Source: Zygnema circumcarinatum SAG 698-1b (taxonomy: Eukaryota; Plantae; Zygnematophyceae). Taken from it: a stretch of 64,000 nt of DNA. Below the pieces are notes generated by a model. It saw only the letters and a list, made by a program, of their open reading frames with translations. It made no database searches and was not told the DNA's origin. Below, piece by piece: positions 16,801 to 64,000 of this stretch (position 1 is its first letter; the number at the start of each line of letters is the position of its first letter). The stretch is taken from assembly GCA_037447605.1 (NCBI GenBank), contig CM074804.1:3635909-3699908 (forward strand). Reading direction: 5' to 3'. A program made the translations under genes and the position numbers.

Positions 16801-17496
16801 TCGAGAGTGAAATGTCGTTTGGGCGTGCAGGCTGCTACTGGAGGGGTTTTTGTGTCCCAGGAACCGAACAAAATCATTCTCTACCGTGGTTGGCCGCAAC
16901 AATTTGAAACTCCGGAAGAGGCCGAGATTGTGCCCTCTCGGCTGGAAGATGCACTCAGAGAGGAAGACGCTGAGGTGGAGGTTGACTATTCGAAGTTGAT
17001 AGTGGAGCAAGTGAAATCAAGCTCAAGCGATGAGGAGGACTCCGAATCGGAGGGAGAGGAGGGGGAGGAAGAGGAGGGGGAGGAGGACGAGCAAGAGGAG
17101 GGGGAGGAGGTGGAGGACGACTATGATCTTGAAGGGTGGAAGTATGAGGAGGACGAGGAGGGCGATGGCAATGATGTGGTAGAAATCAGATCGAACTTGG
17201 AAGATGGGGGCAGACTTATTGCGGACGCACAGGAAGGAGAGGCATCAGCTCCGGGTGATTTTGAAAAGAATGAAGATAGATTGTCTGTCTCTAGAATGGC
17301 GGAGTCCTGGGAAAGGAGGCGGGGGGGGGCGGGCGGGAAGGAAGAAAGTGGGTATGGGGAGATTCATCGACTGGGAGAGCGCGGTAGATCAGGAGACGGC
17401 GATGGTCACCGGGGTAGTGATGATGATTTATGGAAACAAGAAACAATTCGTCCAAGGAGAGGTACTAAGTACTGGGAGGATTTAGAGAAGCAATAG
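10893..17496 (+). CDS. CFM2: Chloroplast CRM-domain RNA splicing factor with four CRM domains (CFM2-like)
   Basis: CRM1: [33 protein letters not shown]...[23 protein letters not shown]2: LPPHFVLG...[28 protein letters not shown]...[13 protein letters not shown]3: [26 protein letters not shown]...[11 protein letters not shown]4: [11 protein letters not shown]...KGRAAGT...[20 protein letters not shown]. The fourth CRM distinguishes CFM2 from CRS1/CFM3. Likely start is ATG 10893 (MAASLL..., transit-peptide-like), although the ORF is open further upstream. Confidence 0.85.
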
Positions 17497-30814: not shown

Positions 30815-33332
30815 TCAGAGCCGACGTTTGCGAGGAACTGAGACGTAGCCTGAAGAGTCCAACATAGCTGCGACCATATGCGTCGTATTCTGCGCGCTAT
30901 TTCCTTGGCTCTGCACGACACTGCTCGGCTCTACTGTCGAACGGTTCTGAGTCGACTCCGCCTCACGTGCCATTGTGTGCTCGACTGGCCCACTACTAGG
31001 CCCAGCCTCTGACGATTCACCTCCTGCCTGCTTGCTGTCCTCCTCCTTCAAGGACTGCCATTCTGGAACTTCAGAGGAACCAGCCCTCCCTGTCTGCCTT
31101 TTCTCACTTGACAAGCTTTCCTCTTTGACCGGGGGCTGACAATCGTCCTCCTCTTTGTCGCCATCCCAATCGCTCTCACCCTCGGAACCAGAAGCCTCAA
31201 ATTCAGGTGAGACAGGCTCGGTTGGAACAGCCCTCGTCTGAGATTGCCGCAGCTCTCTAAGTTTCGCCTTTTTCGCATTAAGCACCGCCACAAACTGTAA
31301 GCAAAAATATTACCATATAAAAGAATAAGGCGTCTACAGAAACAGAACTGCCTCAGTCGTAGAGCCAAACAACCTTCCCACCTTTACTCCGACCCAATCT
31401 ACTTGAAATGAGGAAGGCCTCGAGTCCAAATATTTTGAGCCACAAACCACAGTGCACTCCTTTCAAAATACAAATTTATTAAATTCTTGTCACAATTCTA
31501 CCACCTCCTTTCAGCAAACAAGCTTCAACTACAAAATATGCGGCGATGCAGGAAAGCCTAGACTCCTTTACGATCCGTTCCTTCACACACAGGATACGTC
31601 AACTAAACCATGTCATGTCTTAAAAGCTGCTCATAAATCTACTTATGGATGCACCCTGCATGCCCCATGACCGTCTAGCTGTCTCCAGCAGATTGCATTT
31701 GGACAACTCATATTTGAGTCAGCTAACTTGCCTTTTTGTATAGGTCAGCTTCAATCGCGTTCTTCTCCTTCATGAAACTCTCACTCTGCTTAAGGCACCT
31801 GTCCGCTTCATCCTTCATTCGCTCGAATGCTTTTGATGTACGCTGAAGGCTTTCCTGTTGCGAATAGCTCAATCCAGTTTGTGAGCTGAATCGGCAAGAC
31901 AACTGGTTAAAAAAAGGAGCAGATATTCTTGCTTGTGGGAAACGTTGAAGCATGCTTGTAAGCTAAGTAAAAAACGCACGAATGGACCATGAATAACTCG
32001 TAGAGGATAGTTTGATATTGCAGGCCTGCAATGCAAACTCAGGTTGCAAAGCACTCGCTTTAGCAAAAGGGTGGTGAACTGTCCTTTTTTTCTCACAACT
32101 GATTGCAAGTGTGCTTCTTCCCGATCATTTAACTTCAATAGTGGATAGATTAGTTGGCAATGACAGTGGCAGTGACCACGGCACTTGGCAGGTCAATAAA
32201 TTCACCATAGAAGTCATGCTATCGGGAAGCAGTGCACGTGCAATTGCGTGAGACGAAGAATGAAAAACAGAATGCATAACTTACATCCAATTTTACGTTT
32301 TCATCGATGAGCATGTCTAGAATTCCTCGAATGACAGCACCTCGATCCGCCACAGGTTCAAATTCCAAATGTGCAGTCAGCCTCAAAGATCCTCGCTGCA
32401 GCTCCCATGACAGCTGAAGTTGTCGGCCCAACCAGACCAGCTACGGACGCTGAGAAAGGAGAACCTCACTGAAATGTGCATTGACAGCAAAAGAAGAAAA
32501 AAAAAGAAAGGGATCACGTAGCAATTCCAGAGAGCAATTGGATAAAAAATTCCTGCTCGGCCAGCTAAATAACTACCATAAGTTGGCAGATGGAAAATGG
32601 CAAAGGATAATCACCTTTGTTGCAGATAGTTCCATCACTATTAGACTACTGTTTGACCTTTTCCGATTCTTTTGACCACAAGCTTCTGAAACAAAGTTAA
32701 TCACTGGTTAAGTGCATGCGGAATAGGGGAGAGGAGAAATTGCATGCTCAGAAGATTTGTCTAAGGACAACAGGTAAGGTTGGGTCAAAAGGTTATCCAA
32801 CTGCAGTTTGCAACTTAAACATACTTTCATTTTATCGCCTTTCCCAGGGGAAAAGGCATATGCTGAGGAATCATCCTGTTGAATCAGATAGCGACATATC
32901 ACATCTCGCACGTACTCCTGCGTGCTGTCGAAACCCCAATCTTGTGCACGCTCCTGAATGTCTGACTCTGGAGCTGAATATTCACAAGTGCGAAAAAAAA
33001 CTCAAAGTTAAACAAGCAGGATTAACCCAAACCAAAGTAGACACACCTTCAAGCTCAACTCATCCGGTCAGTGCACTCTGCTGCGCACCTCATATCAAAT
33101 GTTTGCCTCTCCAAGCAAGCACACATCGCAGACATAACGACGAACAAGCATTTTATCCTTTCTTGCCGCTGCACGAGGTTATAAGGCGCGGAGGATCACG
33201 TGCGCAGAGCCAGGCCGAGTCTCCATCCGTCGCTTCAAGCATGAAGTGCGCGGGCCTCCAATGGCCGAGCACATAGAGCCGCCCACCCTGGCGCAGCACG
33301 ATGCGCGCGCAGCTCTCCTTCCCCTCCGCCAT
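30815..33332 (-). CDS. XRCC4: DNA repair protein XRCC4 (non-homologous end joining)
   Basis: N-terminal head MAEGKESCARIVLRQGGRLYVLGHWRPAHFMLEATDGDSAWLC. Further exons encode LSWELQRGSLRL...GILDMLIDENVKL and a coiled coil AFERMKDEADRCLKQSE...ADLYKK-FVAVLNAKKAKLRELR, followed by an acidic tail and a basic C-terminus PRKRRL. This matches the plant XRCC4 pattern. Confidence 0.88.
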
Positions 33333-33743
33333 GGCGCCCTCCTATCCTCTCCTCCCCCTCCCGAGCAGGAGCCAGCCCGCAGAGGCCGCCACGCGGCACT
33401 CCCGCACGGGCGATCCGCGCTTTTCGGCTCCTGGCTGCCTTGTCGATGACGTCAATTTAAAGATAAATCTAGCGTGGCACACAGCCATTCGCGGCGAAAG
33501 CAGTCTGATGACGCTAGCGCAACGCGAGGCGAGCTGGTTTCCGGGAGGGCGGGACGCAGCGCTTTGGCTCGGGCCAGCTGGGCCCTGCGAGAGCTGGCCC
33601 TCGCGGCGAGTGGTTTGACAATGCAGCTTTCTTTCTTTCTCTTAGCAGCTTCAGAGTATCCTTCATTGGACGCCACGCGTAATTCGCCGCTGTCCGTCGG
33701 ATGCTCAGGAAGCGCATGTTGATCTGCATTACTCATCTTGGTA
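33333..33743. promoter_or_regulatory. 411-bp divergent promoter region shared by XRCC4 and the VPS13-like gene
   Basis: Head-to-head ATGs at 33332 (-) and 33744 (+). GC-rich, with a TGACGTCA palindrome at 33447-33454. Confidence 0.55.
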
Positions 33744-36700
33744 ATGGCGGTCATGGCAATATGGTTTCCTTATCTATGGATATCAGCTGCGTTGCTGGCT
33801 CTGCTGCTCTTGAGCGGCACCAGCTTGCTGGCCCTCGTTTTGGACAGGCTGTTGTGCCGCTTCCTTCAATTGCAGCGCAGCCCAAACCGAAGAATTTGTG
33901 CAGTGTCATGGCGAGGTGATTTTCTGCTGCATTTAATACTTCGCGAAGCAGTCCCTTTATAAGCCTTGCGTTTTGAAATGGCGCCGTTGAATCCCTTAAT
34001 GTTGCGTCTCATGAGAAAAGCGTGCGACTTGAACTACTAAATTAACCACATTTTTTGTAGGATATAAGTTTCTGTGCCGAATGATAAGAGTTATAAAGTT
34101 TCTCATTCCCGACAGCTGTCTGCAGGCCTCACGCTGCAGAACTTGCACATTGGACCTGCAGCATTGCAACGACTTGACTTTCCCCTTCAAATAACGCACT
34201 GTAAGTTTCCTTGGAAACACTTGTCTTCACGATTTGATTTCACACCACTTTTTTCTTTTTCAGCTTCCTAGGACGTAAGTGGGTGGTTTTTCTGTCGCAG
34301 TGGCAATTGAGCTTTTGGAAGTGCGGTGGCCTTGGTTTCTGCTATGGTGGAACGGGCCCCTTCTGAGGCTCCGCGGCTTGAAGGCCACGATGGCAGTCCG
34401 CACAGTTCCCCTGGTAGGCCTACTGGAGCTGGATCGATGCTTTTTGCATGATGATTAGAAAGTGTCCGCATTTCCGCAAAAGTTATACTTTGCAGGATGA
34501 AGGCTTCCGGATGCACTTGCGTGCAAGAGATCAAGGTCGTTCGTGCTGTCGACAGCTATACACTTCTTGTGCGTGAGATACTTAAGCGTAGCTGACGACT
34601 CATCATGGTGTGCAAAGGCCACTATAATTGAGTCGAGATAATAAAGATTGCTTACCGAATGTAGGCTGCAGAGCCTTGCATATATAGTTTAAATTTAAAT
34701 GGATTTTTCTTTTCGGGAATCAAACTTGATGCATTGTCAGTGAGCGGCAAATGGTTGATCTGGCAAGCAGGCCTCGCTTATAAGGAAAATCATTAAGAAG
34801 TAAGAAAAAAAAAAAAGGCTAAAAATTGCAAGGCGCTTAAGTCAGCAAAAAAAAAAAATCAAGTAAAAAGACAACCCTCCAGCTGTGGTGTTCACCGTAT
34901 GTCCTTCAGGTTAAATTTTAAGCTTGGAAAATCATTAAGTCATGCTAATTATTGAAAAGCTTAACACTGGAATATCCAGCAGTGACTGGCTAACCTCTCA
35001 GACTTCTCCAACCTGCTCGAGTCAATGACTGATTCTTCAAGGTTTGTGACAATTTTCCTTGCAAGAACCAATTTCTTAAACGCAGAGTACTTTCTCTGTA
35101 GAAGCCACCAATTGATGACGTACAGATGACCAGTTCAGACGGCCTGTTTGAACAAACGATGTTTTCAGTAGTGCCAAAGTTTTTTCAAACCAAACTCGCT
35201 TATCAACAGAATCTGTTGTTGGAAAGGAAGCTGTTCAGTCATTGTAAGGATTGAAACTAATGATTTTCGAAAATGCACTTCTACCGGTATCTCTAGCGTT
35301 GTCAGAACAACTTCGAAGGTGAATCCACAGCATTTAGATCGCTTTTGTATACACCAGACCTTGCATTGCGTACCTTCCACCCACCCTAGTGTGGCATATT
35401 CTGTCGACTGTTGTTGCACAGCCAAAGTCTTCTGCTGCCCTCGACTATCAACTGTTCCTAAAGAAACGAAAATTTCGGCGAAAGCGCCTGGAGGCAGTCG
35501 ACGAAGTCCTCTGGCCTGTCGGCGAGAGCAAGACACCTGGTGAGGCTTCTGCAACCAGCCACTTCTCTGTTCAACATTTTGCAGTTTGCCTGCTGCACCG
35601 ACGTGGTGCCCCCGATTGCTTTTCAATATGTACAAAGAGAGGCGAACTTCTTTTGGAGAGAGATGACGACAGAATCGCACATCAGAAGAAACACAACAAA
35701 GTTCAGTGAAATCAGGGATGTTGCAAGGAGTACAATAGCCCATGTTCTTCACACATTCTAGTGTATAATCAACACATGTCAAGACCAAGTAGTATCTTCC
35801 TACAATCAAGACCGGCCAATGCATCACCAATTAAAGGACCACGGGTGCAGTTCTGTACATGAGAAATCACCCCCTTATGTACAATGTGACAAGGTGGAGG
35901 CGTGGGCGGTGTGCATATTAACTTATCCATGAAGAGAACAATGATTGGAAGTTCGTTCTATCTTGAAAAGAATAGGAGCTCTCGGTTTTTAGCCATAGAA
36001 ATTCACAACTGGCCTTAAGTGTATCACTAGCGTATGCCGTAGACCCCCTTAGGAAATCTTTTTCAAATATGGAACTAGAGTTTGCATAGATGTAATTTCT
36101 TGGCTGTGCATGTTTCATTTGAGTACATGTTTCTGCAAAGGCTTATTGCAATGAGGATGCAGGCATGACTCAGGGAAAGTCCAAACTATTGCTACTTCTC
36201 CAGCCTTTCGCCCAGTGGGTGCAGCAGCGCTTGGATGTGGTAATGGAAGACGTCAGCCTGAAGTGGAATACAGGGACTACCACTCAGGTATGCTCCTTCT
36301 ACTCTATCAAATATCCGAAGTTGAGCTCGCCAGCATAGGCATGTCTGTAATTTCAAAAGTTGTTTTTTGAGGCTATTGTGGCCTTTGCAGAGGCTAAATC
36401 GAAATGCTTCTAAACAAAAAGCAGGAAGAAGGAACTTATTTCAAGCTTATGCTGGTCGCTTTGTCGCAGGAGGGTTTTGGGGGACTGCTCCTGAGTTTGG
36501 AGGCAGTGTGCTTGAAGGAGGTCAGTTAACAGGCGTGCAGCCAATGATGTTGGCATATCTCGTCCGCTTTTCAGAATGGTGTTAACTCGTTTTTCTCCAA
36601 TGATAAGCTCGCCATTAATGTTTTAACAGCAAGCATGAGCTCGGCATGTAACATGCTCTGAGAAATTCATTCCTGCCGCAGGCTGAAGTACTGGAGGGAG

Positions 36701-39700
36701 AGCCTCTTTTTTCCCCTTCAATTGATCGGGTACGTCATCCAGGGCCGTGCTTGTTTGACTTCTGTGTATGGCAGCCCATTTCAATTCGTGCGTCTGTTGG
36801 CTAAGCGGCAAGGTGAGAAGTGGTCCAAACGGATAGTGGTGTTTACGTTTCTGCACCTTATCTGCAGGCACTCTACATTCGTGGAGTCAACGCGGAGATG
36901 ATTTTCCGAGTATGCTTCTTCCCATTTCATTTGTTTGAAAATGGGTTGGTGACGCTGTTTGAAGTTCTCACTTGCACTTCGTACTAAGCGGGGTTGCAGG
37001 AGACAGTGCTGGAGGGTGAATCGGCGACAAATCAGCTGATTCCCATCATCAGGCGTTGGAGCGCATGCGCAACTGTGCGTTCTCCTCCATTCATTTCTCC
37101 TGCGTTGAGGACTTCTCTCACAATTCGGAGGAATAGCGTGAAGTAGCATGTCGACAAGTTTAAGACAAGTGAGCGATGATTAGAATGAAGAATGCGTAGC
37201 AGGAATAGGTCTCTAATGAATCGAGTGAATGTAACGACAGATCGCCTGTACATTACCTCAGATTTCATGTGCTCTGGGTGCTCCTGGGAACGACAGGTGC
37301 ATGCAGGAGTTACACGAAAGGGGAATTTGGGAGTGCGAGTTTCCCTTTGTTTTGGGGCCGTAATTATTAGCTCCAATGAAGCGGTCAAACGTGGCCTTTC
37401 AGTCCTACTCACCCAGCTTGTGGGCTACATTCGTGTGAAAGAGGTACATTTCAAGACATTGGGAGGATACCTGACATCCATCCATTGCATCATTAGTCTC
37501 ACCTTAACCCATTGATTCAGCACTTCAAAATAGCGCTTTCACAAAAGCTGTTTGAAACTAGCAGCTGTGTTAATGGTGGGGGTGTTATTGGGTGCTTTCA
37601 CACAGTTGCAACGCACGAGGCCAGAAGCATCTGTGCTGGAAAAACCGACGGCGTGGTGGCGCCATGCAAGTATGTGCTTGAGGCACCCAGCTATTTGCCG
37701 GCTTGCTTCTCAACTATAAATGTGATTAGGTGCTAGGCAGAGGATTTTTTTAACTTTTTTCCTTACCATCCTCCATGCCCTTCCTGTACCAGATTGCCCC
37801 TAATGATGTGCCAGGAGCTGTGCCGTGCCTTTTCCTTTTTTCTCTCATACAAACGTTTGATTTGGCTTTGGGCGTGCTGATGACAGTCTCAACAGTAGTT
37901 CGCGAACTACGGAAGGTGACTCCAGCAGCCTCTCTTCGCAGGCCATCTCTTTCTGAGAACCGAAAATTGCGCATCGAATACATGCGGCTTTATGTAGGAA
38001 AACATTCAAGAAGGCACTCATGGTGAGCTGGACCTTAAAGTCGGAAGGAGGCTGAGAAATCTTGTTTGGGACCCTGCTGCTTTTTCAACGTAAACATGGC
38101 GGGATTCCTTGCATACCTTCCGTTTGTAAGCACCTGCATTCCCGTAGGATTGGTTGTGCAGGAGAAGGAATTACCGGCTGGCTGAAATTGAAGAGTTGGT
38201 GGGAACCTTGGAAGCCGCACGCTTTCGTTGGTGGGTTGCTGCAAACGTTCGTAAGACGGAGGCGCTTCTACATTGGAAAGTGCGGTGCTTCTCCTAACTG
38301 TGACTTAGTCATGCCTTCTGTTACGGGGAACAGGGAAGGAAGGGGGTGCAACTGCGATACGTTTCACACACTAACTTAATGTTTTGTGAGCGTTGCGTCG
38401 GCTGATTTCATGTCCTGCTGTGAAGTGGAAAGGAATGGTCTCAACAAGTCGCTGTATTGATTTTGGATGTTGACAGCATATTGTGTGTGATACAGGAAAA
38501 GAGAGCAGCTTATTTCGAGGATCTTACCAAGACTCTCGATGCAATTCATAAAATCTTGAGCTCCAAAAAATTAGGTTTGCAATCGTTCACCTTTCCACAA
38601 TGCACAGGCTGCATTGTGCACAGGCTGCATCATGTATCATGGCTTGTGGGTGGACCATGGGATTGACCTGCTCACCACGCTATTCCTTAATTCTCTGCAT
38701 CTTGTTACGAAATTGTTTTTTTTTCTTTTTTACTGCATCTTTGACTTTTGCTATTTTTATCTAGATGTTTCTTTTATATTCTTGAATCTTAATCCTGATT
38801 TTTTCCCCTTTGAAAGCCTTCATGTACCTCTCTGGATTTATTCGCGTTTAGTTCGGTCTCCATTACTACTTCACTGGTCCCTCTTGCTGATTCTGCCGGC
38901 CTCTTTCACGGATTCATGGATTCTGCTGTTGCTGTTAGTTGATGGCTTTTGCACAATGCCGTACAGGGAAGCAAGGCGAGCAGCTTGTAGGGGAGCTGCA
39001 ACTGCACTTCACATGTCCCAAGGTAATGTTAAATCGATTTAGCTTAATTGGTCATTTTAAATCACATAACAATAAAGAGACAGGAGCCATGAAAGCCTCC
39101 AATACAACTGTCTGCAAATTTTTAAAACAGAAAAAGAAGATGCAAGCACTTTTGTAAAGAGGGTTTCATCTTATGATCTGCCTCGTCCGTATCTGAAGTG
39201 TATCTCGAGAATCTGTTTTCAGGGCGAAAGGCATTACTCACTCTGCTGATTTTTTGGAAAGACTCTGCATTCTGTCATTTTGCATATTAGTATGTCTAAA
39301 TTTTTCCTGCAGTGTCTCTTCAAAATTAGTAAGTGTCACATTGCTTGAACTGCATTTTCGGCCCAGCCAGCGATGGCCCGCAGTTTTTCTGAAGTCACGC
39401 CGGCTTGTACCTTGCACGGACTATGGCTATCCTTCCTCCATCACTTTCACCCTGATGCAAGAAGTAAATGAACGTTGAGTGTTGCGTTCTGTACATGCGC
39501 AGGTCAGCTGGCTCGTCTCTTCGATGCAAGACCCGAATTGGGCTGGAAAACTGTCCATCATCAACATCCGGTGTTCTCTGCAGGTGCGCCGTCCATTCGT
39601 TAGTCAATCTGCATGGCATGCAAAAGTCGCGCTTCAGGAGCTTTTCACAGCGCGTGATTCCTTTACGTCGGCATGTTTTGTGCTTTCCAAGAGTCTGAAT

Positions 39701-45700: not shown

Positions 45701-48700
45701 CCCAAATGCTCAATGGTATTTGTATTTCGACCAATGAATTTTTGACTCTGATCTTATTTCCACTCTTTTTCATTCATGGTTGCACTTTTTCATCAGCTGG
45801 TGGACTGATCTGAGGGTTTTGCCCCTCAAAAAGACCCACCTTTCTTAGGAAGGACTACTTCACTATGTGTAAAAGTTCAAGAGCCTGCCTCACTCGGTTG
45901 AGTATCCATGACGTGATTTTGCAGCAATCTGGAGGCTTTTGCCGATGTGATGCTGTTCGTCAGCAGGCTGAAGGCTTCTGTAAGTGGTGCGGTAGGAGGA
46001 CAGCCTGCGGGAACAATGGCCACTCCAATTCCGCACGCCAAAGCGACCGAGATTCTGTCTACTCCTCTACCAACTCCCTCCGGATCTGAGATGCAGCGTG
46101 GCGAGTCATCTTCAAGCGGACATCCGCTTGAGTCGACTGCTGTAGCGGTTGACCAGTCCGTGAATTCCTCCGAAGTTGCGCCCTCTCCTCCTCCCAATCC
46201 TGCAGGGCTCAATTTGCAAGTCACATCAGCTGTCGCTCCGTCCCAAAAAAAAATCTTGCCTTCCATATTCAAGCATCTCTCGACTGTACTGCGAGGAAAG
46301 GTGTCATTAGCAAGTCTCTCTCCTGTTGTCATTCATCCATCTGCGCTCTCTAGAGAGTCAGATCGCGCGACCCATCACCCCCCGCATTCGTCAAGTACAC
46401 AGAACCATTCCCATGAACCAATTTCAACTGGAAGGCCTGTTCATGACACATCCAATATTGAAATATTGGGAAGCCGTGCTCAGTGGCATCCTGCTGCCAC
46501 GCCCCCTTCAACTTCAACTATACCTTCAATGACTTCTTTACCTGTAGCTGCCAAGAAGACAAACAGAGTGCTAAGAATCCGCATAGAGTTGAGCGGCCTC
46601 AGCATAACCCTATCTACTCTGCGCAAAGCATTCACACGCCTCGTTTTTGAGGACATCCTGGTATGCCAAACGCCACGCCTTCTTCCGTCGGATTCATGAT
46701 GCACCTCTGCTTTTGTTCCATATTGTAGAGTTGCCTGTTTCTGTCTAGAGTCTGCTGATTTGCAATTTCTCTGGTTATGAATGTTTTTTTTCCATTTTTC
46801 TTTGCTTAACATGCTCTGTCCTATGCATCGCGTATGTATTTTTTAACAGCCTTGCTTCTTCCTCTATTTTGCTTATCCCCAGTGTGAGGTGAATAAGGAT
46901 CCCGCTCTTCTCTGCATACTGGCGCGAGTTAACAGCCTCCAGATCATGGATCTGCAGGCCAATGACGAGTACGTGTGTTACGAAACTTGCTCCCTTTGCT
47001 TTTTCCGTTTCATATGTTCTGGCCTGTTAACCATATGCTTTTCTTTGCAGGCGTTATCGATATATTGCGAAGTCTTTTGGCAAGCAGCCAAGTGTTTTGT
47101 TGGAGGTCCGGCAAGGGATGCAGCAGCGCGCCGGTCTGGCCCTTCTTTCCCAGGTCAGCATTTTTTGCTTTTCTTTGAAGGCAAAATTCGTTTCCTTTTA
47201 AGCCGTTCGGTGTTCTACCCGCCTTTCCGAGCCGAAGCTCTCAAATACTTTTCTGAATCTGTCCGAATGTACACCGCAATGACAATGGATTGTTGAAGGG
47301 TTTGCTTCACCACCATCGATTTACTTCTATTCCACAATGTCTGACTTTGAATATATGTGCCAGGAGTTTGAATTCGCTATAATTGCCCCGTTTGCTCATT
47401 AGGTTCTTCTATCAAGGCTTAGAGGTGATGTATTTTCTCAGTTGCTGAATCCAGGCGGCTACTGGGAAAACTCATGTTATAAGTCCGCATGTGTTTTTCA
47501 TATGTTCGGGTAGAATGACATAGTTTGGGAAAGGAGGATGGCATGTGCAGATGACGATGTGGGCGGAAGTTCGGGAGTTGCATGTCACAGTGCTGCTGCG
47601 GTGGATTAAGGACCTCATTTTCTGGATCAAGTCCTTGCTGGCATTACTGAAGGTCGTTTTTACATCCTAAGGCAGCTCAGTGTACAGCTCAGTGCTCAGT
47701 GCTCTCAGCTCAGCTCAGTTCAGTGTGCTTACAAGTGTTGAGATGAGAACTCCATCTCGTTCGGCAGAGAAAAGGGCATTGTTTTCACGTTTTTCTGCGT
47801 GAGGGTGCCGCACAGAGTAAGGATCGCTATCCCAAGTCCAAAAAAGTCCATCTGGAAGCGGAGGTGGTGATAAAGTTGAAGCCACTCATCTATATTACCG
47901 CAATCGACCTGCAAGTCAGCATGCCAAGGTGCAGACATTAGGCTTTCTGACCAAGTCTAGCAGCCATTCAAACTACCGCCTACTTGCTTTCTCAAATGCG
48001 CCGGCAAATTTCTGCAAGGAGATGACTCAGGATTGAGGGTATTTCATGATGTTGGTTCAGGCATTCATGGGCCCATGAGAGCTACACACTTCATGCTGCA
48101 AAGGCCGCAGTTATGATCGCAGCACCGCCTGTCGTGGAGGACGCTCTTGCTCTCATTCAAAGGTTGTTGAATCTTCTTACTTCAAACGAATGATATCTGA
48201 AAAGAGGCTCCCAAGGTCCAGTATGCATAATACTCAACATTGCGAGCCAGATAATAAAAGGACGTCACGTCTGTTGTCGATTTTTTCCTCCTGCTTATCT
48301 TCATCTGTCTTCTTGTTAAGTTTTACTTCTCGTGCTGCGCCTGCATGCATGGTCAGTGTTGGTCAAAGACTTTTCTTCTCATTTTGGAGCGATGCAGGCT
48401 AGCAGAAACTCCCACTGAGAGGGATGAGTTTGTCATGGATGACTCCTTCTGGGAGCCATTCCAACACCTACCTGGAGCACGGTTCACTCTAGCCATCCAC
48501 ATGTCGGAATTCCATGTCCTCTGGGCTACCACTGAGGTGGGTCATTGGCTGGGCAAGGGATGTTGTGAATCCAAGCTGGTGCTTGAGTAAACTGATGGAA
48601 GATCTCATGAAGCAGAGTTTTTTCTGGAGAGCAGGTATGAAGGAGTCAGAACGACAAGTAGTGATACTTGGCACTAAAAATTATAATCAAGGGCGTTTGC

Positions 48701-52181: not shown

Positions 52182-55100
52182 AACCCTAGTGACTTCGTTT
52201 GAAACCTGCCTGCTTGTGAAAATTTAGGATAGGTACACCGATCTCCGTCCTGGAGGCTAAAGTACGATCTTTGGCGGTGAACTGGACGCGTGAAAAGCAG
52301 TTCGAGCTGAGTGCAGGCACAATGGCCGGATCGCTGAAACTGCAGCTGGCTGTCTCCTACCTCAATAGCACAATCGAGGTTCCCCTTGGCCTTCCTGATT
52401 GAAATTTTGGACATATATTTAGCCATTTCGTCACTATTAGTGGCTTGAATAAACTTAAGAAACTGTTTAACGAAGTATGTTACTCCACTACGCTTAAAAA
52501 TTGAAGCGCTTTGTACCGTAATGTACCCCAACCAATCATTGGTACCTGGAAAGATGTTGAAACCCAGCGTATGTGTGCAAGTATGCACGGGCTGTCATGT
52601 GCACAATTAAGAACAGGTGTTCGTGGAAAACGCTTCTGCATGCTTGCATCTGATTTTGGCACTCGATCCTGGGTGGGAGTCCCTGCATTGGCTTCCTGCA
52701 GCTGCTGGATGTTGTGATGGAGCCATGGCCAGTGGAGGCCGAGCTCTGGTCTCAGGGAGGCCCAATGCAACTGCGTCTCATTTCCAAGCAGCGGATGCGC
52801 ATCATCTTTACACCCATGCAGCTGCGCTCCTTTGGGGACGCCCTCAGCTTTGCTCGTCTCATTGGGAAAAGTCTGCGCGTGTTCAGAGGCCCTCAGCCTA
52901 CTGCTATCGTGGAGGTTTGCCCCGATCCTAGCCCTAGAAAGATCAAATTGCTTCGTTTCTAATTTTCTCTGCCATACCCACTCACTTTTAAAACCCTTGT
53001 CGCTCACAGGCATCCAGCAGACAGGGGTCAAACGTTGTGCAGGATCCAAGTCACCAGCTCGATGAAAGTGACAGCACATCCAAGGCATGCCATTCATCCT
53101 ACTCTTCCTTAACTTCCCTCTAAGGCAGCCCTCTCAAGAGCCACAGTTTGTCAGAAGAGCCGGTTGAGATTGGCCTCTTATAAAGAATGGGCCTTGAAGT
53201 GGGCTCGTTATAACGAATCTGAAAGCAGCTGTTAGCATGGACTTTCCACTGACGGATACCTGAAGATGTTTGGCTGGACAGAGAAAGTCACAAATTTCTC
53301 CTGCGCTGCCGGTCGCTGCTAGGGTAAGAAAAAAGAAACCTAGCACCTTGCAACAGAGGGTGGGTAAGGATTATCAGCAAACCAGCTAGGCTGCAAGGCA
53401 ATGCGGAGAGGGGAACTCTTGAGTGAGAGCGATGGGCTGTGACGAGACCGTTTATTGGCGTGTGATTGCAGAATGCTGTGCAATCGTCTCTGCACAGGAT
53501 GGCTCAAGAGTTGCGGAGCATGGCCCGCTACCGTATCGTTAACTTGACAGGCCTTGAACTCTACTATTGGACAGGTGAGCCAAGGGTCCTGATGCTTTTC
53601 AGCTCCACAACTTTTCGATGTCTAGAAGCCTGAGCTGCTTGTTCTGATCGAGGAGGTGGGGTTGTAGATGACGGAGAGGGAGACAAGGAAGCGCACCTTG
53701 TGGAGGCGGGGCAGGAGGAGGCGGTTGCTATCCAGCCCATGGAGAAGCTTGTAACTCTACCGGACTCGAGACGCATTATGGCGCGCGCGCTGAACTTGCA
53801 GCTGAGAGGTGGTTGGCTCCCAGTTTTGGACATCATTGTAGACAAGGTGAATGCACATGGAAGTACAGATTAAAGCCTTTGCTGGAAAAATCTCATCCAA
53901 CGATATCAAATACCTTCATTGTGTGAAATCGCTGTCGGACCAGTTGCGTTGAATAACAAAGTTGGCTGCGTTAGACCATATGCTCAGGGAGTCGGACACA
54001 TGAAAGAAGTCGCGCAATTTTCCTGATTCGTCGAACTAGTGAGGTTCTTATCTGTCTTGAACGGTAACACATGCAACACATGGCAACACATGCTGTCAGT
54101 GACGTAGACGTGAATACTTTTTACTGGGGTGGTGAGGAAGGAGCTTCAGAAGGGCGACTATCTCCACTGCCAGTGTTGTGCGGAGAGTTTGGCAGTATGG
54201 CAATGATATGCTGTATTCTCCACTGTAGCCTATAGGAAAACCTGCTTGTCATACTTTGTACTGTGTCCACTGGTTATTTAAGGACGCAAGAAAGGCGGTC
54301 TCTAGGTTTAAAGTGACGGCTTTGGTGGGCTGGTTATTCCACAGGTTGGGAAGTACATCGTAAACCTACATTCTGTCTTCGATGGAGTCGATGTTCCACT
54401 GGTGGTGGACGTTACGCTGCATAACCGGACGAAAATCGTGACAGTGCACTCCACAATTCGCGTTGACAACAATACCACTCTGCCGTTGCATTTATACCTC
54501 CATCTCCCTACCATGCGTTCGACATCAGTCTCGGGCTACTCCGGAGCACCACTAGGTGAGTGACCGCGTGATTTCATGCCTTGCAAAACGCAGCGCAGAA
54601 GTTGTGAGGGATAGGGAAACATTTAACTGCTCTTTCATGTCTATCTGTGCAGGTATTCTTTCTCCTAATGCCAAACTCTTCGTACCAGTTGCATCAGTCC
54701 TTGGAAGGCAGCTGTTTATTCAGGCAGAGGTACACCTCATCAACCCCCCCACTGTGTGAGATGTTGCGCTTAGCGGACTGTTCGCATCTGCAATGCAATT
54801 CGATGTGTGATGGCGAGGCTTGTCTGATGGCTTTAGACAAGGCACGTGCAGGGATTTGGTGTGGCGGAGAAGGATGTGATTGGACTGGATACGTCACAGC
54901 TGGCAGAGCAGCACGGCCTGCTGACGTGTCCTCCGTTGGAGCCTGGAAGTCCCCCCTTCTGCTGCTGCCTGCAAGTGGTTTCCCCTGAGGCTTCACGTTT
55001 TGCCAGTACCAATGCTGGGGAGGTGCGTTCGGGCTCGTATGTCTTAAATATTTTGCTTTTTGTAATCATTCTGTTGATGGTTTCTCGGAGCAACAGAGGT

Positions 55101-58100
55101 GCTTGAAAGATGTGGGCTTAATGTGGATGTTCTATTCTCATCATCCTCGGAAGTATAAAGCTGGAGGCTGGTGTACAGGAATTTGTGCTCTCCTTCTTGC
55201 CGCCTTTGGTACTTGAAAATGGCCTGCCCTTCGACATTGAGGCTACTGTCGTGGCTGCGGAGAATGGGACTTGCTGCAGATGCAGCATCCCGACAGGTAA
55301 AGGAGGCAACTTCAGGATGGAAGAGTGCTTGAATTGCAGCCGTGCCGCTCTTGCCACAATCCAAACCTACCCTTCACATCAGTGCTTTTAAAGCAGCCCT
55401 GAAGCAATTGGTTTTAGTTCTAAGTGAACCTTTAGACAACAATTTAGTCTGGTGGTTGGAACTCTCTTGTTTGTCATTTTTTTTTTAGTCCTTGCTTTTA
55501 CTCAGCTTTCACTGTGCGGCTTGATGTGACCGCAATGCTCCCAATGGCACTGCTAGTTACTGAAGTTTTACTTAGCATTTCTCGGCCGTTTCCCTCTCAC
55601 GCATCCCTTATGTCCGCTCTTGGCTTGACCGCAGGGAAGCACGTAGAACTTCATAGCTTTACTTTGAGCGAGCAGATTGAGCTGGCCCTCTCTGTAAGTC
55701 ACAATTCGTTTGGGCAGCTCATTTGTCTACTCTTTTTGCAACTGGCTCTTTTGAAGAAGAAGCTGACAGGCTACAGCCAACAGCTATTGCTAAGTTGCGC
55801 ATTCTTTGATGCTCAACTTTTTGTCCTTGGAGTGTCCAGGTGCCTTCTTTGCGGGCTTCAAGTGGAGCAGCGCAGCATACTCCCATCCACCTGCCGCTCA
55901 AGTGAGCCTCATCTCCTCTTTCCCAATGTTTGTAGCCGGTTCTTGGAGTGCAGTGCTCATGAAAAACGTTGCGCATGTCTGCAGCTATATGCTCGAAAGC
56001 AACGCAATTTTGGCAGGCCTGCCTGGAACGCAGCTTCCAAAGGAACTAACCTTACAGACAGCCAACAACAGCAGGAAACTGCACGTGAAACTGGACAACA
56101 GGTGCAGTTCCTCAAACCTACATTACCGTGAATGCACATTGGACGTAAAGTTAAATGCACAATGAATTCAATGTTTCAGCACGCGGCTGAGGGAACAGGA
56201 GGGCTTTGCGTAGTGAGAGGATGAGAAAAGCGTTCCTTTTGTTGCAGGGCCACACGTAAGCCTCTGCTTCGCCGTGTAGCGGTGTTTTCGCCCTTCTGGA
56301 TTGTCAATGAAGCTGGCATTGATTTGCAATTGATGAGCAGTGATAACGAGCCTGTCCAATGTCCTTCTAATGAGGTAAATGACTCTGTGATATCACTGCA
56401 CCCAAACAGAGCTAATCTATTGCAAAATTCAGACACTACGTATTTTTTCACTGTTGCGCATGCTGGATGCCCCGCAAGCGTACTATTGCTCTGTGCTTGC
56501 ATGAACTCAGAATTTTGGCTTACCCTGCAAGGCTTCTCCTGCAAATGACATGCTTGTCCCTTCACTCTGTCCTCTCGTTATATCAGAGTTGTAATGCCAC
56601 AAGGAAAGCACACAAACTAATCCTGTCTACTCGTGAGTGGAACTAAGGAAAGCGGAATGTGGGGGTTGTTGCAGGCTGGTCCATTGGTTCCAGTTCTGTT
56701 GACTGTTACTGGATCGCACACAGCGCTTTCCGTGCAGCAGGGAGAGTGGTCTCGGCGCATCCCCATCGCCTCTGTGGGAATCAAAGGAGCTGTCTCATGC
56801 GCGGCTCAGCTCGCAGGCAGCAACAAGGGAGAGGTCCTTGTGCTCTCCCTCCCCTACCTTTCCTAGCATGGCTGCTATGGTTGCTTTGTGTTCAACCTGG
56901 GAAGCGTTACCATTCGTGCACTGTTTGGCATGCAGGTGCTATTGAAATGGCTGTATGAATTCGGGGTAGAGGTGACTCTAGGGCCGTCCAACTTCCCGCG
57001 CACCAAAGTGCTGAGAATCACACCGCGCTTTGTCCTCGTGAACGCGACCGGACAGGATCTGGAGATCGTGCAAAAGGATACTGCGGAAAGCAAAGTGCGG
57101 ACTCACACTGCAGCCCTTCTTTCTCTCTGACAGTCATGTGCTCCATTCATGAACTTCAAAAGTGAGGATTGCGGTTGGTCTTGTTGGAGGGCTACAGATC
57201 TTGAAGAGTGAATCGCGGCTCGCACATCACTGGGTCAGCAGCGAGAAAGAACACCGGATTGCGGTCCGACTGGTGAAGGATGGCCCTTGGGATTGGTCGG
57301 GGAGCTTCGACTTGGACAAAGCCGGGGAATTTGCCGTGCGTGTGAGACATGCTGATACAGGTAAGCTACTACCACTATTTTGCATGGAAATGATTTCATG
57401 AAAGAGTCGTAGACTTTTCCTCTGTGCACCGTTGGAGTGCATAAGGTGAATTGGAAGTTTCGATAGGCATCTAATGTGAGAAATTGGCGGTAAATAGGCG
57501 CTTGCTAACTCCAGCTTCTTCTGTTCGCGTAGTGTCTTTCTCGAGATTTTTTTCAATAAAATCTGAGACTCTTTCTATCCAGCCATCCGGTTGGCTGCCT
57601 ACTGCTCTCAGTTCCCCTAATAATTGTCATGCGAAGTTTCTGTTAATCTATCGTATCACCAGTTTGATGAGATAATTGTGACAAGGAACCTTTCAAGCTC
57701 ATCGCAGCTGAAATTAGTCCGAACTAATTCAGGTCATTATTATCCGCTATCATCGAATCTGCTTAGCCGCAAGGAACCACATTCTCTTTTACAATTTCTT
57801 GCAGGGCTGTATACCATCATCTCCATTGATATTTCTCCTAATGGGGCCTCCGCTCTGATCACTTTTGATATTTGCGAAGGCGTGAAGAAGTACGCCCCCT
57901 ATCGGTATGTTCTTTGGTTTCGTTTGACTTCGTATCTTAAATTTTGGAGATAGCACAGAGACTTCCGGGACAAGTTTTCACTCCTCTGATGCGGAGTTTT
58001 TTGCAGGCTGGAGAACCAGTGCAGCAGCGTGACTCTCACTGTGGGGCAGAAGCACGCGGGAAGGCAGCAAGTCCTGGCCCCAAAATCTTCTATGTCATAC

Positions 58101-61100
58101 GCCTGGGATGAGGTAGGCTGTTTGGGAACGATGTATGGGGGCTCAAAAGGAAGCTGAACTGAACTGAGGACGATGGCATCTTTTTTTTTGGTCAATCAGA
58201 ATGAAATCGATCAAGCAAGCATGCTTTACATTAGTTCCCTTTGTTGCCTACAAAATGACCTCGCAGTTCCGCTATTCACGAAGTCCTATCTCCACGGTGG
58301 TTTTTTCCTTTTTTGGCAGCCGAAATCTCCACAACTGCTGGTGGTAGAGTTGAAGGATTACGAAATTGTCCGCGAGTATACCCTCGACGATATCAAGTCT
58401 CGTCCCGCCATTCCTCTGCAGGGGCATGGAGGGTATCTCTTCTCAGACTCCCTGCACTAACAGCTCAAAACTGCTCCTACTTTTCACCGTTTCTTCATAG
58501 CACGCGTGGGCTCGTAATGCTGGGAACTGACTGATAATTCAGTCATTAAATTTGTGGAGTGTTGGAACAGGTTTCTTAATGGATTAACATTGCCCGTGTA
58601 TGGAGGTGATGTGGAGCACGTTTATGTCAGTCTCTATGCGGATGGTGCAACTCGAGTTCTGTTGTTTTCTGACAGTGAGAAAGCAGTTTCAAGGTGGGGA
58701 AATTGTCATTATCTCCTTGGAGGAGACTATGTTGACCAAATGTTTCCTCTTCCCATTCCTGTAGCCGCTAAGCTTTTGCAAGAGTACCTCTGTCCCTCCA
58801 CTTGTTACATAATACTGAAAATATGTTGCGGTACAGAGGTGAAGAGGAGGAACGAGAAAGTGTTCTGTCGAAGCTGCATGCGACTGTGAAGCACATCACA
58901 GCAGTGAAGGAGCTTCTAGAGCAATGGGGAGTACAGGTACGCAATGACCTTTCGGTCACCTTTTCAGCCCTTCACCACAGCTGTAATTTACTGAACAAAC
59001 AGTCGAGAATATCAGTGTGTAGCAGCTGGAGAGGCACCTGATGCAGCAGAATGGCAAGGTATGCTCTTGCTTCTCGGCATGGTTCAGCTTGCATACGTCT
59101 CATCTAGCGCAGAGTTTGCTAAAACAGGTGCTGGCTCCATGCAGGCTGATGAGCTGGAACAAGCAATATACTCGAAACGTTTAGATTCCACTGACGACGT
59201 ACATGGAGATGATGAAAGGGCGGTGGACAACGCCGATCTGGAAAGCATAAGCATGAAGGAACATGAGCAGAAGTCGCCTGCAGGGGAGGGTGAAGGCGGT
59301 TCTGCAGCTCACGGCTTGCCAGCCCTAGCGGAGGAGGATGCAGTCCTTGAGATAAGCGGTGAAGCGATGCAGCCCGAACGTGAGGGAAAAGGTATTGCAT
59401 CCGAATCAGAAAATTTTGGATTGGATATGCTTTCCTTCGCAGACGGCTCTGGAAAGGGACCAAGAACAGCTGAGGCAATGACGGATAGAGTTGTGTTCAG
59501 CAATGGGCAGTGGCCCGAAGAGGGGAACCCAAACGTCAATGCAGCCTCTCAGGCAACTGTCGTAGGCTTGCATGCCGGACACGGGTTCTTCAGTGATGTT
59601 TCTGCCAAAGGGGCCAGCTCGTCTCTGGCCATAGTAAGGCAGGCAGCTGCATTGCCAAAGAGATTGTACAGAGGCCTTGACAACTGGCGGCAACATGAGA
59701 TAGCGAGGGAGGAACGCCGGCAGAAAGTGGCGGATGAAGAAGCCGAGGCAGTGGCGTCCTCAGCCGCCAATGACATGGCAGTCAGCCTGAATGTTATCCA
59801 TGGTCGACGAGTCAGTCCTGAAGGGTTGGAGATTGCTGGTGGAGACCTCTTTGTGCGCATTGTGGCTGCTCGAGATTTAGCCTCCAGGAGCGAGGCTTGC
59901 AATCCGTACGCATTGGTGAAGGTGGAGAATCTTCTTCCCTTCCTTGAGAGTTTGTGCAAATGTGAGCTGAGAGGCTTAATGAGAGCTTGCGGATTTATGA
60001 AACGAGATTAAACGAATTGCTTATGTGGTCTTTGTAGTGTCTTTCTGTTCTCCACTTCATCGAATGCACTTTAAAATGCCTTCCCTTACGTTCGGCAGTT
60101 TGCATACTTTATGCTTTTTTGTGTCACTGACGGTGCTTTTAGCATTCGTCAAGGAGTCGCGGAGTCCAACAAGTGAAGGCACTCTGAGATGAGATAGACA
60201 GGGTAGAGCACAAACGTCTGCGTCTCTCTCCCCCCCACCAGTACTCCTCCCATTTTCCGTCTCCTTGTGTTCCATTAAACAAGGGACGAAGGCCATTACT
60301 AGTCAGTTACTGATACATGTGTCACTCGATCTGAAAACCTGGAGCAACAGGTGGAGGAACGCAGCAAACGCACAAAGGTTCAACGACGAACAGTGCGGCC
60401 GCAGTGGAACGAGGAACTGCTCTTCAAGGCGGCGTCAGTCACTGCAGACATGTCAGTTGCATTGTACAGCCACAACCCACTGGGAGCGGATACGTTCCTT
60501 GGAGAGGTGATGAAGCACTTTACCTCCTATCGATTAATTATTTAAGTGGTCTCTTCCTTGTTTCCCTCGTCTTCTCTCTTTGTCATTCAGGACTCCTCCG
60601 TTCATGATCCGTTCGGTCATATTAACGTGAGCTCAGGGCACATAGCAGGTCTATCTGCTAGAAGTGATTATCGTGCAGTCCATGTGTTTCTCTCGACAGT
60701 CGGGATCAAGTATAGATTTCAATACTATTACTGGCCTTTAGAGTCACAACCTTTGTAGGGCAACCTATTGATGCAGCTCCAGTAAGGACAGTTCTCTTTC
60801 GAAGCATTTTCATTCAATCGCTTACAACATTTGGGGGCTTTTGCAGCTTCCTCCAATTTCAACGCTTCCCCTCTTACTGTTTGCCTGTCACTGCCAAAAA
60901 AATTAATGGGACTTCAGGGAGGGCTGCAGGTAGTCTTGCCTCTGCCTGAAAGTGCGACTGAACTTAACCGCAGCCTCCAATGGCACACGCTGAGGCGACG
61001 AAACTTCAAAGACCGTGTCAGTGGAAGCGTAGCTCTGGCCACTGTGTGGCAAGCCACGGAGCTCGAGCTTCTGTCTTTTCAGGTGCTGCCTTTCCTGCCA

Positions 61101-64000
61101 TTACTGCTTTTGTTGTGCAGAACACTACTGCATGTCAGAGATAATTTCCAAGTAATGCATGTTCTGACGACGACCTGCCCTGAAAGGTGACTCTGAACAT
61201 TATGTGACTATGTATGTATGCGCTTGTTATTTGTCACAGCTTCAGGAAAGAGAGGCAGTGCTCGCGCGCCTCGAAGAGCTGTTGGCGTTGCGGAGAGAGA
61301 CTTTGCAGGAGGAGGGTTTGGTTGCCCCGCCACTGCAGACCCCGCTGATGTCAGCAAGCGATGAGGCCCCCCTCGCCGATTCAGCGTTGGATCTTGCAAA
61401 GCAGTCGCTTCGCTGGTCACTGAGGGGGACACTTCAGGTCCCACTTGCTCCTTCACCGTGCTGAAGCAAACGTCGATTTTTTCGCAGCTTGTTTGTTGCT
61501 TGCTTGTTGTTTTTTTGCGGTTCATTTGAATGATGGGGACTCTTCGTAGATTTCGAGCTTACAGCATCATCTGTTTGACGGCGTTTCTGCTCTGGGGAGC
61601 ATGCTGCAACTCCTGTAGATTTTTTAGTTCATAGCATCTCTCGCAGTTTGAATTTAAACGACAAAAGCTGCTCAGATGTGCACAATCTGAATTTTCTGCT
61701 GCGCAAGAGACCTCCAGCATGTAACAAATGGAAGGGACGTGGATGACAGGTGTCAGTGATTTCGGCTGTCCACCTAAGAATGCCTCAAGAGTGGCTGCGT
61801 TCAGTGTACACCTGCGATGCATATGTTCTCTTGCGCTGTAAAAACGCGGCTCCTCAGTGCACCGCAGTTATCCCACGGACCTCCTTCCCTGAATGGCATC
61901 AAGCTTTCAGCTTTGCAGATGTGCCGCTGAGCTCAGTACTGCATGTTGAGGTAAGTTGATGGAAGAAACAAGTAATGGCTCATTTGATCGCAGCTTCTCG
62001 TTCCTCTTATCTCTCCGTCGCCCATTGAATGATTCGGCTATTTTCTCGTCGCAGGTGTACCACAAATGGCCACTTGCCCAGGATGTCCTACTGGGGAGGT
62101 CGGAAGTAGCTGTGGCTCTCTTGGAGGTGCGCTTCCCCCGAAAATTACAATTGCACTGCGCCTGAACTGCATATAGGATTATCCTTTTTCCCGCCTACCT
62201 CCTTCTGGGTTCTACATGGATTTTGGCAAACTAAGGATGCTTTTGATGCTGAAAATTGAACAGTATATTCTATTTTTCAACTGATGGTGGCCTTGTTTTG
62301 TGAGGTGTTCTGCCAGGATAAGTTGCCCCAATACATGTGGCTCAAATTGCGCACTGCTGATCAGCCGGTGCGTTGTCGACAGTTCAAATGCCCTAGAAAT
62401 GTGAAAAGCCAATAATTCGTTGTGGTAAATCGACTTTTGTGCGCTGTGCCTCCCTGGCATTTGTGGCGATTCATAGTCAAGAGCTACTATTCCAAAGCTT
62501 CTTCCCATGTAGCGGCCATGTCCTGAAACTCATCGCACCTTGAAGGGTGCAGGAAGGGGGCCTTGCCCGCATTCGTGTGCGTCTGCAATGGAGCACTGGA
62601 AAGGGGATGGCACCGGAGACGGGCTCAGCTGTAGAGGTGCACAAACCTATAAGACCTACACCAAAACAGAACCTGGAAGGAATTTAGAAAAAAACAAAGA
62701 GAACCCAGGTCCATATTGGGTGATGTTTGTTATTTGAGGGGCTGCTTTGGGTGGCGTTATGCAGGTTGCCTTCGAAAGCGTCAGCATCGCAGTTGTGGAC
62801 CATGTCCCACGAGAAGTTCTACACATCCTCTTGCGCGGGTTGCGAGCAGAATATACTGATTTGGTAAGCTTCGTCCATCATCACAACAACCTGAAATGCT
62901 GTTTCCCTGCTGCAAACTTCATTGGCTGAAGAATTTCCTCTTTTTTATTCTGTAGGCGCGAGAACAGGCAACACGTATCCGGTTAGGAAGCGTTCAGGTC
63001 GATAACCAACTGCTCACATCGCGAGAACCGGTGGTGCTGCAGGCCACTCAGGTGCGCTTGAATGGCTCTGTTAATGTGTTTACTTCAATAGATGGACAGG
63101 AATCAACCCTTATAATTCTGAAAGGTGAAACCTTTAGAAGTGCAAGTGGGCTAACCTTGGAGTGCTGTGTGGCAGCGGGAAGGCCGGCGCCTGCACAGTG
63201 AGGAAGGGGCCAAGCCGCTGCTGCTGCTCGAATGGACGCGCTTGAAGTCGAGTCCGAGCATTGGGCACTTCCGCAACCTTCTGTTCATGCTTCGGGAGGT
63301 GGACCTGCATGTGGAGGAAGACCTGGCTGATGCAATTATCACCTACGTCATGGAGCTGCCGACACAAGACCTCTGGCAGGAGCAATGTAGACCAAAGCAA
63401 GACAAAAATTCGGTGGGTGGGAAATACTTACCGTCGTAAAGTTTTGATCTCAAGTGATTATGTAGAGGGAATTGATATGCATACGCTTGGCCGTCAAAAT
63501 GCAGGCGGAGAATGCGGATGACAGGAGTGTGGGAGTGCTGATTCAACCACAAGGCTGGGTTCCCGGTAGGCAGGTGCGTCGATTGTGGTTGGCAGTTTCC
63601 TACATTTGGAGGGTATGTCCATGCAATTGTAAAAAAATAGGTATGCTTAGAACATCCTCCGAGTATTATAGGCACTCAGGATTGAGATAGTTGGCGAAGT
63701 TTCAAACTCATCTGCCGTGGTGACAATTGCAAACTTACTGAAGTCAGTACGCGATTCTAGCTTTCACAGCAACAAGCAGATATTTTCCTAGTTCTGCAAA
63801 TTTCCAAGATTGTGAATTCCTGTTTGTAATACCTGACTGTCTTCCTACGCTTTTGCTCTAGGCGTTGAAGGTATGAAATATTTGTGCAAGTTGATGCATC
63901 GTTTATTATGCCTAGAAGACAGTGTGTTATTGTAGCTCAACCATAACTTAGCATTATGTTACAATTGTTCACTTCCTTTAGTCGATCTCAATCAAATTGT
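33744..64000 (+). CDS. VPS13: VPS13-family bridge-like lipid transfer protein, many exons, 3' end beyond the window
   Basis: The Chorein-N-like start spans exons 33744-33915, 34126-34200 and 34301-34413 (VLDRLLCRFL...AVSWRGLTLQNLHIGPAALQRLDFPLQIT...EVRWPW). Other VPS13-like exons: VQQRLDVVMEDVSLKW (about 36220-36290), VHVDELSVALIDD and LAVSYLNSTIE-DVVMEPWPVEA (51.9-52.9 kb), VAB/SHR-BD repeats YRIVNLTGLELYYW, VPLVVDVTLHNRTKIVTVHSTIRVDNNT, RTKVLRITPRFVLVNATG, WDWSGSFDL and SYAWDE (53.5-58.1 kb), and VPS13_C-like VAFESVSIAVVDHVPREVL, LGSVQVDNQL and LREVDLHVEEDL (62.7-63.4 kb). Many exons between 36 and 51 kb were not individually resolved. Confidence 0.88.
47673..47725 (+). repeat. Degenerate (GCTCA)n pentamer microsatellite in a VPS13 intron
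   Basis: cagctcagtgtacagctcagtgctcagtgctctcagctcagctcagttcagtg. Confidence 0.7.
48898..49062 (+). repeat. CT-rich low-complexity polypyrimidine tract in a VPS13 intron
   Basis: About 165 bp of almost pure C and T with (CT)n subrepeats. Confidence 0.85.
52133..52176 (+). repeat. (CT)22 microsatellite in a VPS13 intron
   Basis: Perfect dinucleotide run of 44 bp. Confidence 0.95.
59836..60508 (+). other. C2 domain 1 within the VPS13-like protein (split over exons)
   Basis: GGDLFVRIVAARDLASRSEACNPYALVKVE, then KRTKVQRRTVRPQWNEELLF...MSVALYSHNPLGADTFLGE. This is a canonical C2 pattern. Confidence 0.8.
61750..62128 (+). other. C2 domain 2 within the VPS13-like protein (split over exons)
   Basis: VSVISAVHLR...CDAYVLLRC...CTAVIPRTSFPEWHQAFSF...VLHVE, then VYHKWPLAQDVLLGRSEV. 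This is a C2 pattern. Confidence 0.75.

Follow-up and report, generated by a model that had tools for sequence, protein, structure and literature searches.

VPS13Y is a clade of the VPS13 proteins described from prasinodermophytes, chlorophytes and charophytes, and reportedly land plants have lost it (Leterme et al. 2023, Contact 6:25152564231211976, PMC10683392). Its defining mark is a pair of C2 domains placed straight after the VAB domain, and an N-terminal transmembrane (TM) helix was predicted by TMHMM in most of its members and, among the other paralogues, in only one VPS13X (PMC10683392). The ancestral layout has accordingly been proposed as TM-Chorein-VAB-C2-C2-ATG2_C-PH, and the role of an anchored tether, similar to that of the extended synaptotagmins, has already been suggested for the clade (PMC10683392). 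The N-termini are noted as divergent, and the VPS13Y of Coccomyxa has no detectable Chorein domain, for which a loss of lipid transfer was suggested (PMC10683392). The class is known from sequence analysis alone; a literature search found the name VPS13Y only in Leterme et al. (2023), and functional work on VPS13Y was not found. Described here is a stretch of 64,000 nucleotides from the alga Zygnema circumcarinatum SAG 698-1b (contig CM074804.1, positions 3,635,909 to 3,699,908; hereafter the window), which probably carries, as judged from homology and domain order, the first ~85% of a VPS13Y-class gene from a streptophyte alga.

The canonical members of the family (yeast Vps13, human VPS13A and VPS13C, and plant VPS13S) begin at an amphipathic Chorein helix and reach the endoplasmic reticulum (ER) via adaptors such as FFAT-VAP. 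Outside VPS13Y, a TM helix at the N-terminus is characteristic of Hobbit and Tweek (Levine 2022, PMC7613979). In both BLTP1 (Tweek/Csf1) and BLTP2 (Hobbit/SABRE/KIAA0100), this helix stands directly ahead of the first RBG domain and is expected to fix the donor end in the ER. The Zygnema gene shares with canonical VPS13 a probable Chorein-type start with its motif spacing, the long RBG rod and the VAB domain, whereas the canonical proteins have neither its N-terminal hydrophobic extension nor its C2 pair after the VAB. Its likeness to BLTP1 and BLTP2 is confined to the anchor end; those families have no VAB and no C2 pair, and their RBG2 is different. Because the gene carries a VAB domain and is colinear with VPS13 proteins, to which its N-terminal exons also align, it belongs to VPS13 and not to the BLTP families. 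The extended synaptotagmins and tricalbins also combine an N-terminal anchor with C-terminal C2 domains, a comparison drawn previously (PMC10683392) and one that suggests anchorage in one membrane with C2-mediated binding of the other, but their lipid transfer relies on an SMP domain in place of an RBG rod, and they are not homologous. An earlier, sequence-only reading of the locus had stated that characterised VPS13 proteins start at Chorein_N, which is correct for the yeast, animal and land-plant proteins and overlooked the algal VPS13Y class.

A single gene with the VPS13Y domain order

One VAB exon of the gene, used as the query of an exhaustive HMMER search, returned a sole full-length match, the protein P0003 (4161 aa, putatively from Spirogloea muscicola), whose Pfam content comprises VAB, two C2 domains and VPS13_C. 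Further relatives of P0003 were found in four Closterium assemblies, with the nearest Spirogloea and Closterium proteins sharing the same Pfam content, and these are followed by fungal VPS13 proteins at an E value of 1e-20. The nearest relatives of the gene are thus zygnematophytes, which fits the published distribution of VPS13Y. When P0003 was compared to the whole window by tblastn, ~30 colinear matches were obtained on the plus strand, running over ~30 kb from residue 72 (position 34306) to residue 3497 (63382). On account of this colinearity, the exons at the 5′ end and those of the VAB and C2 domains form a single gene, as the sequence-only reading had supposed. The gene leaves the window at 64000, and the remaining 664 residues of P0003, including VPS13_C, are without a counterpart inside it.

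The VAB region contains matches to Pfam VPS13_VAB in colinear profile order at 54.3, 55.1, 56.2, 56.9 and 57.2 kb (span 54.3-57.4 kb), of which the best has an E value of 2.8e-8 and scores 33 bits against a cut-off of 22.6 bits. Both C2 domains lie 3′ of the VAB exons, in colinear order with the C2 pair of P0003 (Table 1). A Pfam search of positions 59061-60008 found no further domain, and the ten longest plus-strand open reading frames (ORFs), which are disordered linkers, gave no Pfam match.

In its VAB domain with a tandem C2 pair behind it, its hydrophobic N-terminal helix before a probable, diverged Chorein start and its streptophyte-alga host, the gene agrees with VPS13Y. It differs from the Closterium proteins in that the hydrophobic segment is joined directly to the first Chorein helix, where Closterium has ~75 residues and two hydrophobic segments, and from Klebsormidium in that the kinase insert reported there is absent. 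The sequence-only reading had proposed an anchored VPS13 with VAB and C-terminal modules as an unusual combination. The structural part of that reading is supported; the claim to an undescribed design is not, as a VPS13 with a predicted TM anchor has been known since 2023 as VPS13Y, of which the locus is probably an ordinary further member. That reading had itself named described orthologues with the anchor as a finding that would remove the novelty, and VPS13Y provides them.

Two long plus-strand exons or ORFs within the gene, at 45917-46696 (260 codons) and 58995-60008 (338 codons), are Ser/Pro-rich and acidic, of low complexity, and match no family; presumably, they form loops of the rod that are disordered. 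Dinucleotide microsatellites of the CT/TC type at 48.86-49.03 kb and 52.1-52.2 kb, which translate on the plus strand as (SL)n, lie within introns.

The hydrophobic segment and the probable Chorein start

The first 33 residues of the predicted protein contain no charged residue, in agreement with the ~30 uncharged hydrophobic residues previously claimed to precede the VPS13-like start, and the Kyte-Doolittle (KD) hydropathy over 19 residues reaches a maximum of 2.46 at residues 15-33. This core is followed by D34, R35, R39, R45, R49, R50 and R57, so that five Arg fall within 17 residues and the C-terminal flank has a net charge of +5. Among all six-frame stop-free segments of the window, a KD value of at least 2.4 is attained in only 0.08% of 19-residue spans, at 10 places, and the chance of such a segment lying in the ~30 codons between the usable starts and the conserved VPS13 start is ~1%. 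By hydropathy alone, the segment is a predicted N-terminal TM helix of the kind that marks VPS13Y, and it is presumably translated.

The position of the start codon is constrained from several sides. An in-frame stop occupies 33720-33722, 7 codons before the ATG, with no AG between the two, so that no upstream exon can feed the frame ahead of the ATG. The conserved helix motif is preceded by just two ATGs, at 33744 and 33753, both of which have G at -3 and +4 and both of which include the hydrophobic codons. In addition, the ATG of an XRCC4-like gene in head-to-head orientation is situated 411 bp away, leaving little room for an alternative first exon.

Exons 1-3 join in frame through canonical splice sites, with introns 1 and 2 in phase 1 and the end of exon 3 in phase 0; the exons, the phases of the two introns and the per-exon translations agree with the sequence-only reading. 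Exon 2 aligns ungapped to P0003 46-64 and to residues 78-97 of the Closterium protein P0007, and exon 3 is 38% identical to P0003 72-108 (E 1e-6 by blastp and 0.004 by tblastn over the whole window). Between them, exons 2 and 3 cover P0003 46-108 with E values of 1e-5 to 1e-6, and the match of exons 2-4 extends over P0003 46-145. Exon 4, which was absent from the sequence-only reading, was located by tblastn (P0003 98-145, E 2e-4; P0007 133-171, E 0.008), and the P0003 alignment continues ungapped across the junction of exons 3 and 4. Exon 5 weakly resembles P0003 and P0007 at the place where colinearity puts it, and exon 10 aligns to P0003 236-295. Exons 1-5 are in phase throughout and near-gapless relative to P0003 and the intronless Closterium ORF, and over ten consecutive exons the frame and the canonical splice sites are kept with no stop. 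Two other solutions, a splice joining 34413 directly with 36174 and an exon spanning 35102-35243, were dropped because tblastn with the Spirogloea and Closterium N-termini placed the exon at 35422-35539, the phases of which fit the acceptor at 36163.

The connection to characterised VPS13 proteins is made through P0003, residues 47-104 of which align to human VPS13C 37-93; the stretch of P0003 matched by exons 2-3 also aligns to VPS13A 24-112. The distance from the 'LDxP' to the 'RWPW' motif, measured over the junction of exons 2 and 3, is 13 residues and is identical in P0003 and human VPS13C. Via P0003, exon 2 corresponds to VPS13C 36-59, from which it follows that ~25 extra N-terminal residues are present here and are merged with the normal first helix into the 33-residue hydrophobic stretch. 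At the level of sequence homology, taken in two steps from the exons to P0003 and from P0003 to human VPS13, the resemblance to a VPS13-type start is real. Exons 1, 2 and 3 searched singly gave no VPS13 match in Pfam or the PDB, owing to their shortness and divergence, and little could be learned from a MAFFT alignment of four N-termini because of their divergence. Most probably, a hydrophobic anchor stands directly ahead of the Chorein start in one VPS13 gene that also holds the VAB and C2 modules.

A comparable arrangement is seen at a locus of Closterium sp. Naga37s-1 (L001, CANJKZ010000330.1), where the first 420 residues form one intronless ORF with a moderately hydrophobic segment ahead of the Chorein helix. 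Upstream, this ORF remains open for 57 more codons, as far as an ATG at 9290; these codons include a more strongly hydrophobic segment (KD 2.10), identical at 39 of 45 residues in a second species, Closterium sp. Yama58-4. The database models of this VPS13Y-like Closterium gene begin too far downstream (L001 9290-10720): P0007 begins at 9461, and P0010, a shorter model, only at what is residue 180 of P0007. In several Closterium models an ABC-transporter domain (PF00005) is also attached, probably because separate genes were merged in error.

Table 1. Features of the probable VPS13Y-class gene and its surroundings, in window coordinates
Feature	Position	Strand	Description
Exon 1	33744..33915	+	ATG at 33744, donor GT; 57 residues
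Exon 1, codons 1-33	33744-33842	+	Uncharged, hydrophobic
Exon 1, codons 34-57		+	Arg-rich flank and VPS13-type N-terminal helix motif
Exon 2	34126..34200	+	AG..GT, phase 1 on both sides; first beta-strand region of Chorein/RBG1
Exon 3	34301..34413	+	AG..GT; carries the conserved 'RWPW' strand of Chorein_N
Exon 4	35422..35539	+	Starts in phase 0, ends in phase 1; helical segment past the first strands
Exon 5	36163..36287	+	Phase 1 acceptor, phase 0 donor; fits exons 4 and 6
Exons 6-10	36470-36520, 36682-36729, 36868-36909, 37000-37074, 37297-37443	+	Within 36470..37443
VAB exons	53469..58679	+	Pfam VPS13_VAB; tblastn P0003 2047-2786
Acidic disordered exon	58995-60008	+	~300 aa; precedes the first C2
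First C2	59838..61076	+	Pfam C2 at 60303-60542, E 3.7e-9; tblastn P0003 3034-3160
Second C2	61747..62126	+	Pfam C2 at 61747-61956, E 1.8e-6; tblastn P0003 3222-3290
Conserved post-C2 rod region	62750..63382	+	'VQVDNQL' type motif; tblastn P0003 3355-3497, E down to 3e-14
XRCC4-like gene	30818-33332	-	Head-to-head with the VPS13Y gene; ATG at 33332
221-aa ORF	35168-35830	-	TTG start; antisense to exon 4, within introns 3 and 4

RNA over the 5′ end and the genomic setting

Taken jointly, it is likely that the gene is a VPS13Y and that its hydrophobic segment serves as an uncleaved N-terminal anchor before the Chorein start. Several observations weigh against this assignment, and the first of these concern RNA. 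The exon 1-2-3 junctions, for which the sequence-only reading had looked to RNA, were not confirmed: among the contigs of runs X1 and X2 the spliced form was not seen, and exons 1-3 occur only unspliced, within continuous contigs at 33200-34478 (X2) and 34277-34533 (X1). Further X2 contigs fall within introns 3 and 4 (34573-34836, 35075-35346 and 35834-36145), and exon 4 has zero depth in this run. Run X2 behaves as RNA, and its contigs carry no strand and drop minor forms, so they cannot show absence. Unlike introns 1-4, introns 6-9 are cleanly removed in X2, where the joints 36520/36682, 36729/36868, 36909/37000 and 37074/37297, all GT..AG, are seen. The pattern over 33200-36145 could reflect retention of the 5′ introns, antisense RNA from the shared promoter region or carry-over of DNA.

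Other adverse points derive from the sequence of exon 1 and from the relatives. If the 5′ untranslated region is long, initiation would be disturbed by two upstream, out-of-frame ATGs (33701 and 33716), and a codon-usage log-likelihood trained on 776 codons of the gene ranks frame 0 of exon 1 best of the three with a score of about zero. In Spirogloea, neither of the two gene models opens with a TM helix, and the two differ ahead of the first strand. Unless the first exons of these models cannot be relied on, some members would thus lack the anchor. Lastly, the hydrophobic part itself has no significant similarity to Closterium (E 20-48).

An alternative is that the gene is a VPS13Y whose main protein does not include the segment, whether by another 5′ end (a downstream start, or one of the several AG dinucleotides inside exon 1 used as an acceptor) or by retained 5′ introns and a shorter, unanchored product that starts, for example, at ATG 36165 in exon 5. 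The unspliced contigs over exons 1-3 and introns 1-4, set beside the removal of introns 6-9 in the same run, speak for this explanation, as do the upstream ATGs and the Spirogloea models. It is nevertheless unlikely, since exons 2-4 show conservation at the protein level, their spacing being exactly that of Spirogloea, Closterium and human VPS13C, and so are translated, while all in-frame starts that reach them lie upstream of the hydrophobic codons. The short distance to the XRCC4-like gene and the N-terminal TM helix reported for most VPS13Y (PMC10683392) also argue against it. A related proposal is that the anchored form is conditional, with retained 5′ introns or the internal start at ATG 36165 switching between an integral protein and an unanchored, Chorein-truncated one, or with antisense RNA from the XRCC4-like promoter region covering the 5′ end; this must be regarded as quite improbable.

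The intron-retaining contigs, together with an N-terminus so diverged that single-exon searches of Pfam and the PDB fail, could alternatively signify decay, in which productive splicing would no longer include the N-terminal exons, left as relics, and lipid transfer would have been lost, as suggested for the Coccomyxa protein in a clade with divergent N-termini (PMC10683392). Against this, the open frame and splice sites of all ten exons, the exactly kept motif spacing and the splicing of the downstream exons in RNA make decay extremely unlikely.

The XRCC4-like gene that faces the VPS13Y gene has weak, colinear Pfam matches to the XRCC4 N-terminal domain and the XRCC4 coiled coil, and its intron at 32974-33199 is spliced in two runs. 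The minus-strand ORF opposite exon 4 has no Pfam match; it may be due to chance, or may be the remnant of an inserted element that would explain the length of introns 3 and 4 (1008 and 623 bp). Elsewhere in the six-frame translation of the window, KD values above 2.8 over 19 residues occur at 2314, at 17127 (minus strand) and at 55443, and the first two (2.3 kb and 17.1 kb) may mark TM helices encoded by other genes.

A putative anchored bridge of the VPS13Y type

Since its core is uncharged, with no basic residue before it and five Arg after it, the segment would be expected under the positive-inside rule to insert as an uncleaved N-out/C-in signal anchor. By analogy to BLTP1 and BLTP2, the anchor would fix the lipid-entry end of the rod in the donor membrane, most likely the ER, and this end of the protein would need no adaptor of the FFAT-VAP type. 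The RBG rod, the VAB and both C2 domains would remain in the cytosol, as would the ATG2_C and PH domains expected beyond the window, with the VAB and C2 modules predicted to bind the partner (acceptor) membrane. The sequence establishes the anatomy of the gene, its domain order and its homology; insertion into a membrane, the topology, the choice of membrane and the transfer of lipid are all predictions.

Outer-membrane signal anchors likewise have a hydrophobic N-terminal stretch with basic residues close behind it. The segment might consequently act as a different targeting signal, directing the protein to the mitochondrial or plastid outer membrane instead of the ER, or be a cleaved signal peptide, and a literature search found no localisation data for any VPS13Y protein. 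Very high hydrophobicity, such as the KD of 2.46 found here, favours recognition by the ER pathway. For a cleaved signal peptide, the segment has no basic n-region and an uncharged core of 33 residues that is far too long, and cleavage with translocation would put a cytosolic lipid bridge in the lumen. Targeting of either sort is therefore considered very unlikely, and an uncleaved anchor, most likely in the ER, is preferred.

The locus adds a clean example of VPS13Y, in which the hydrophobic helix is fused to the Chorein start without a linker, the 5′ structure is constrained by an upstream stop and a head-to-head neighbour, and the motif spacing is identical to that of VPS13C. As a well-defined gene model from a streptophyte alga with a small genome, it could serve for the first test of localisation and topology in this class. 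The question at stake is whether a VPS13 can act as an integral-membrane bridge in the manner of BLTP1 and BLTP2.

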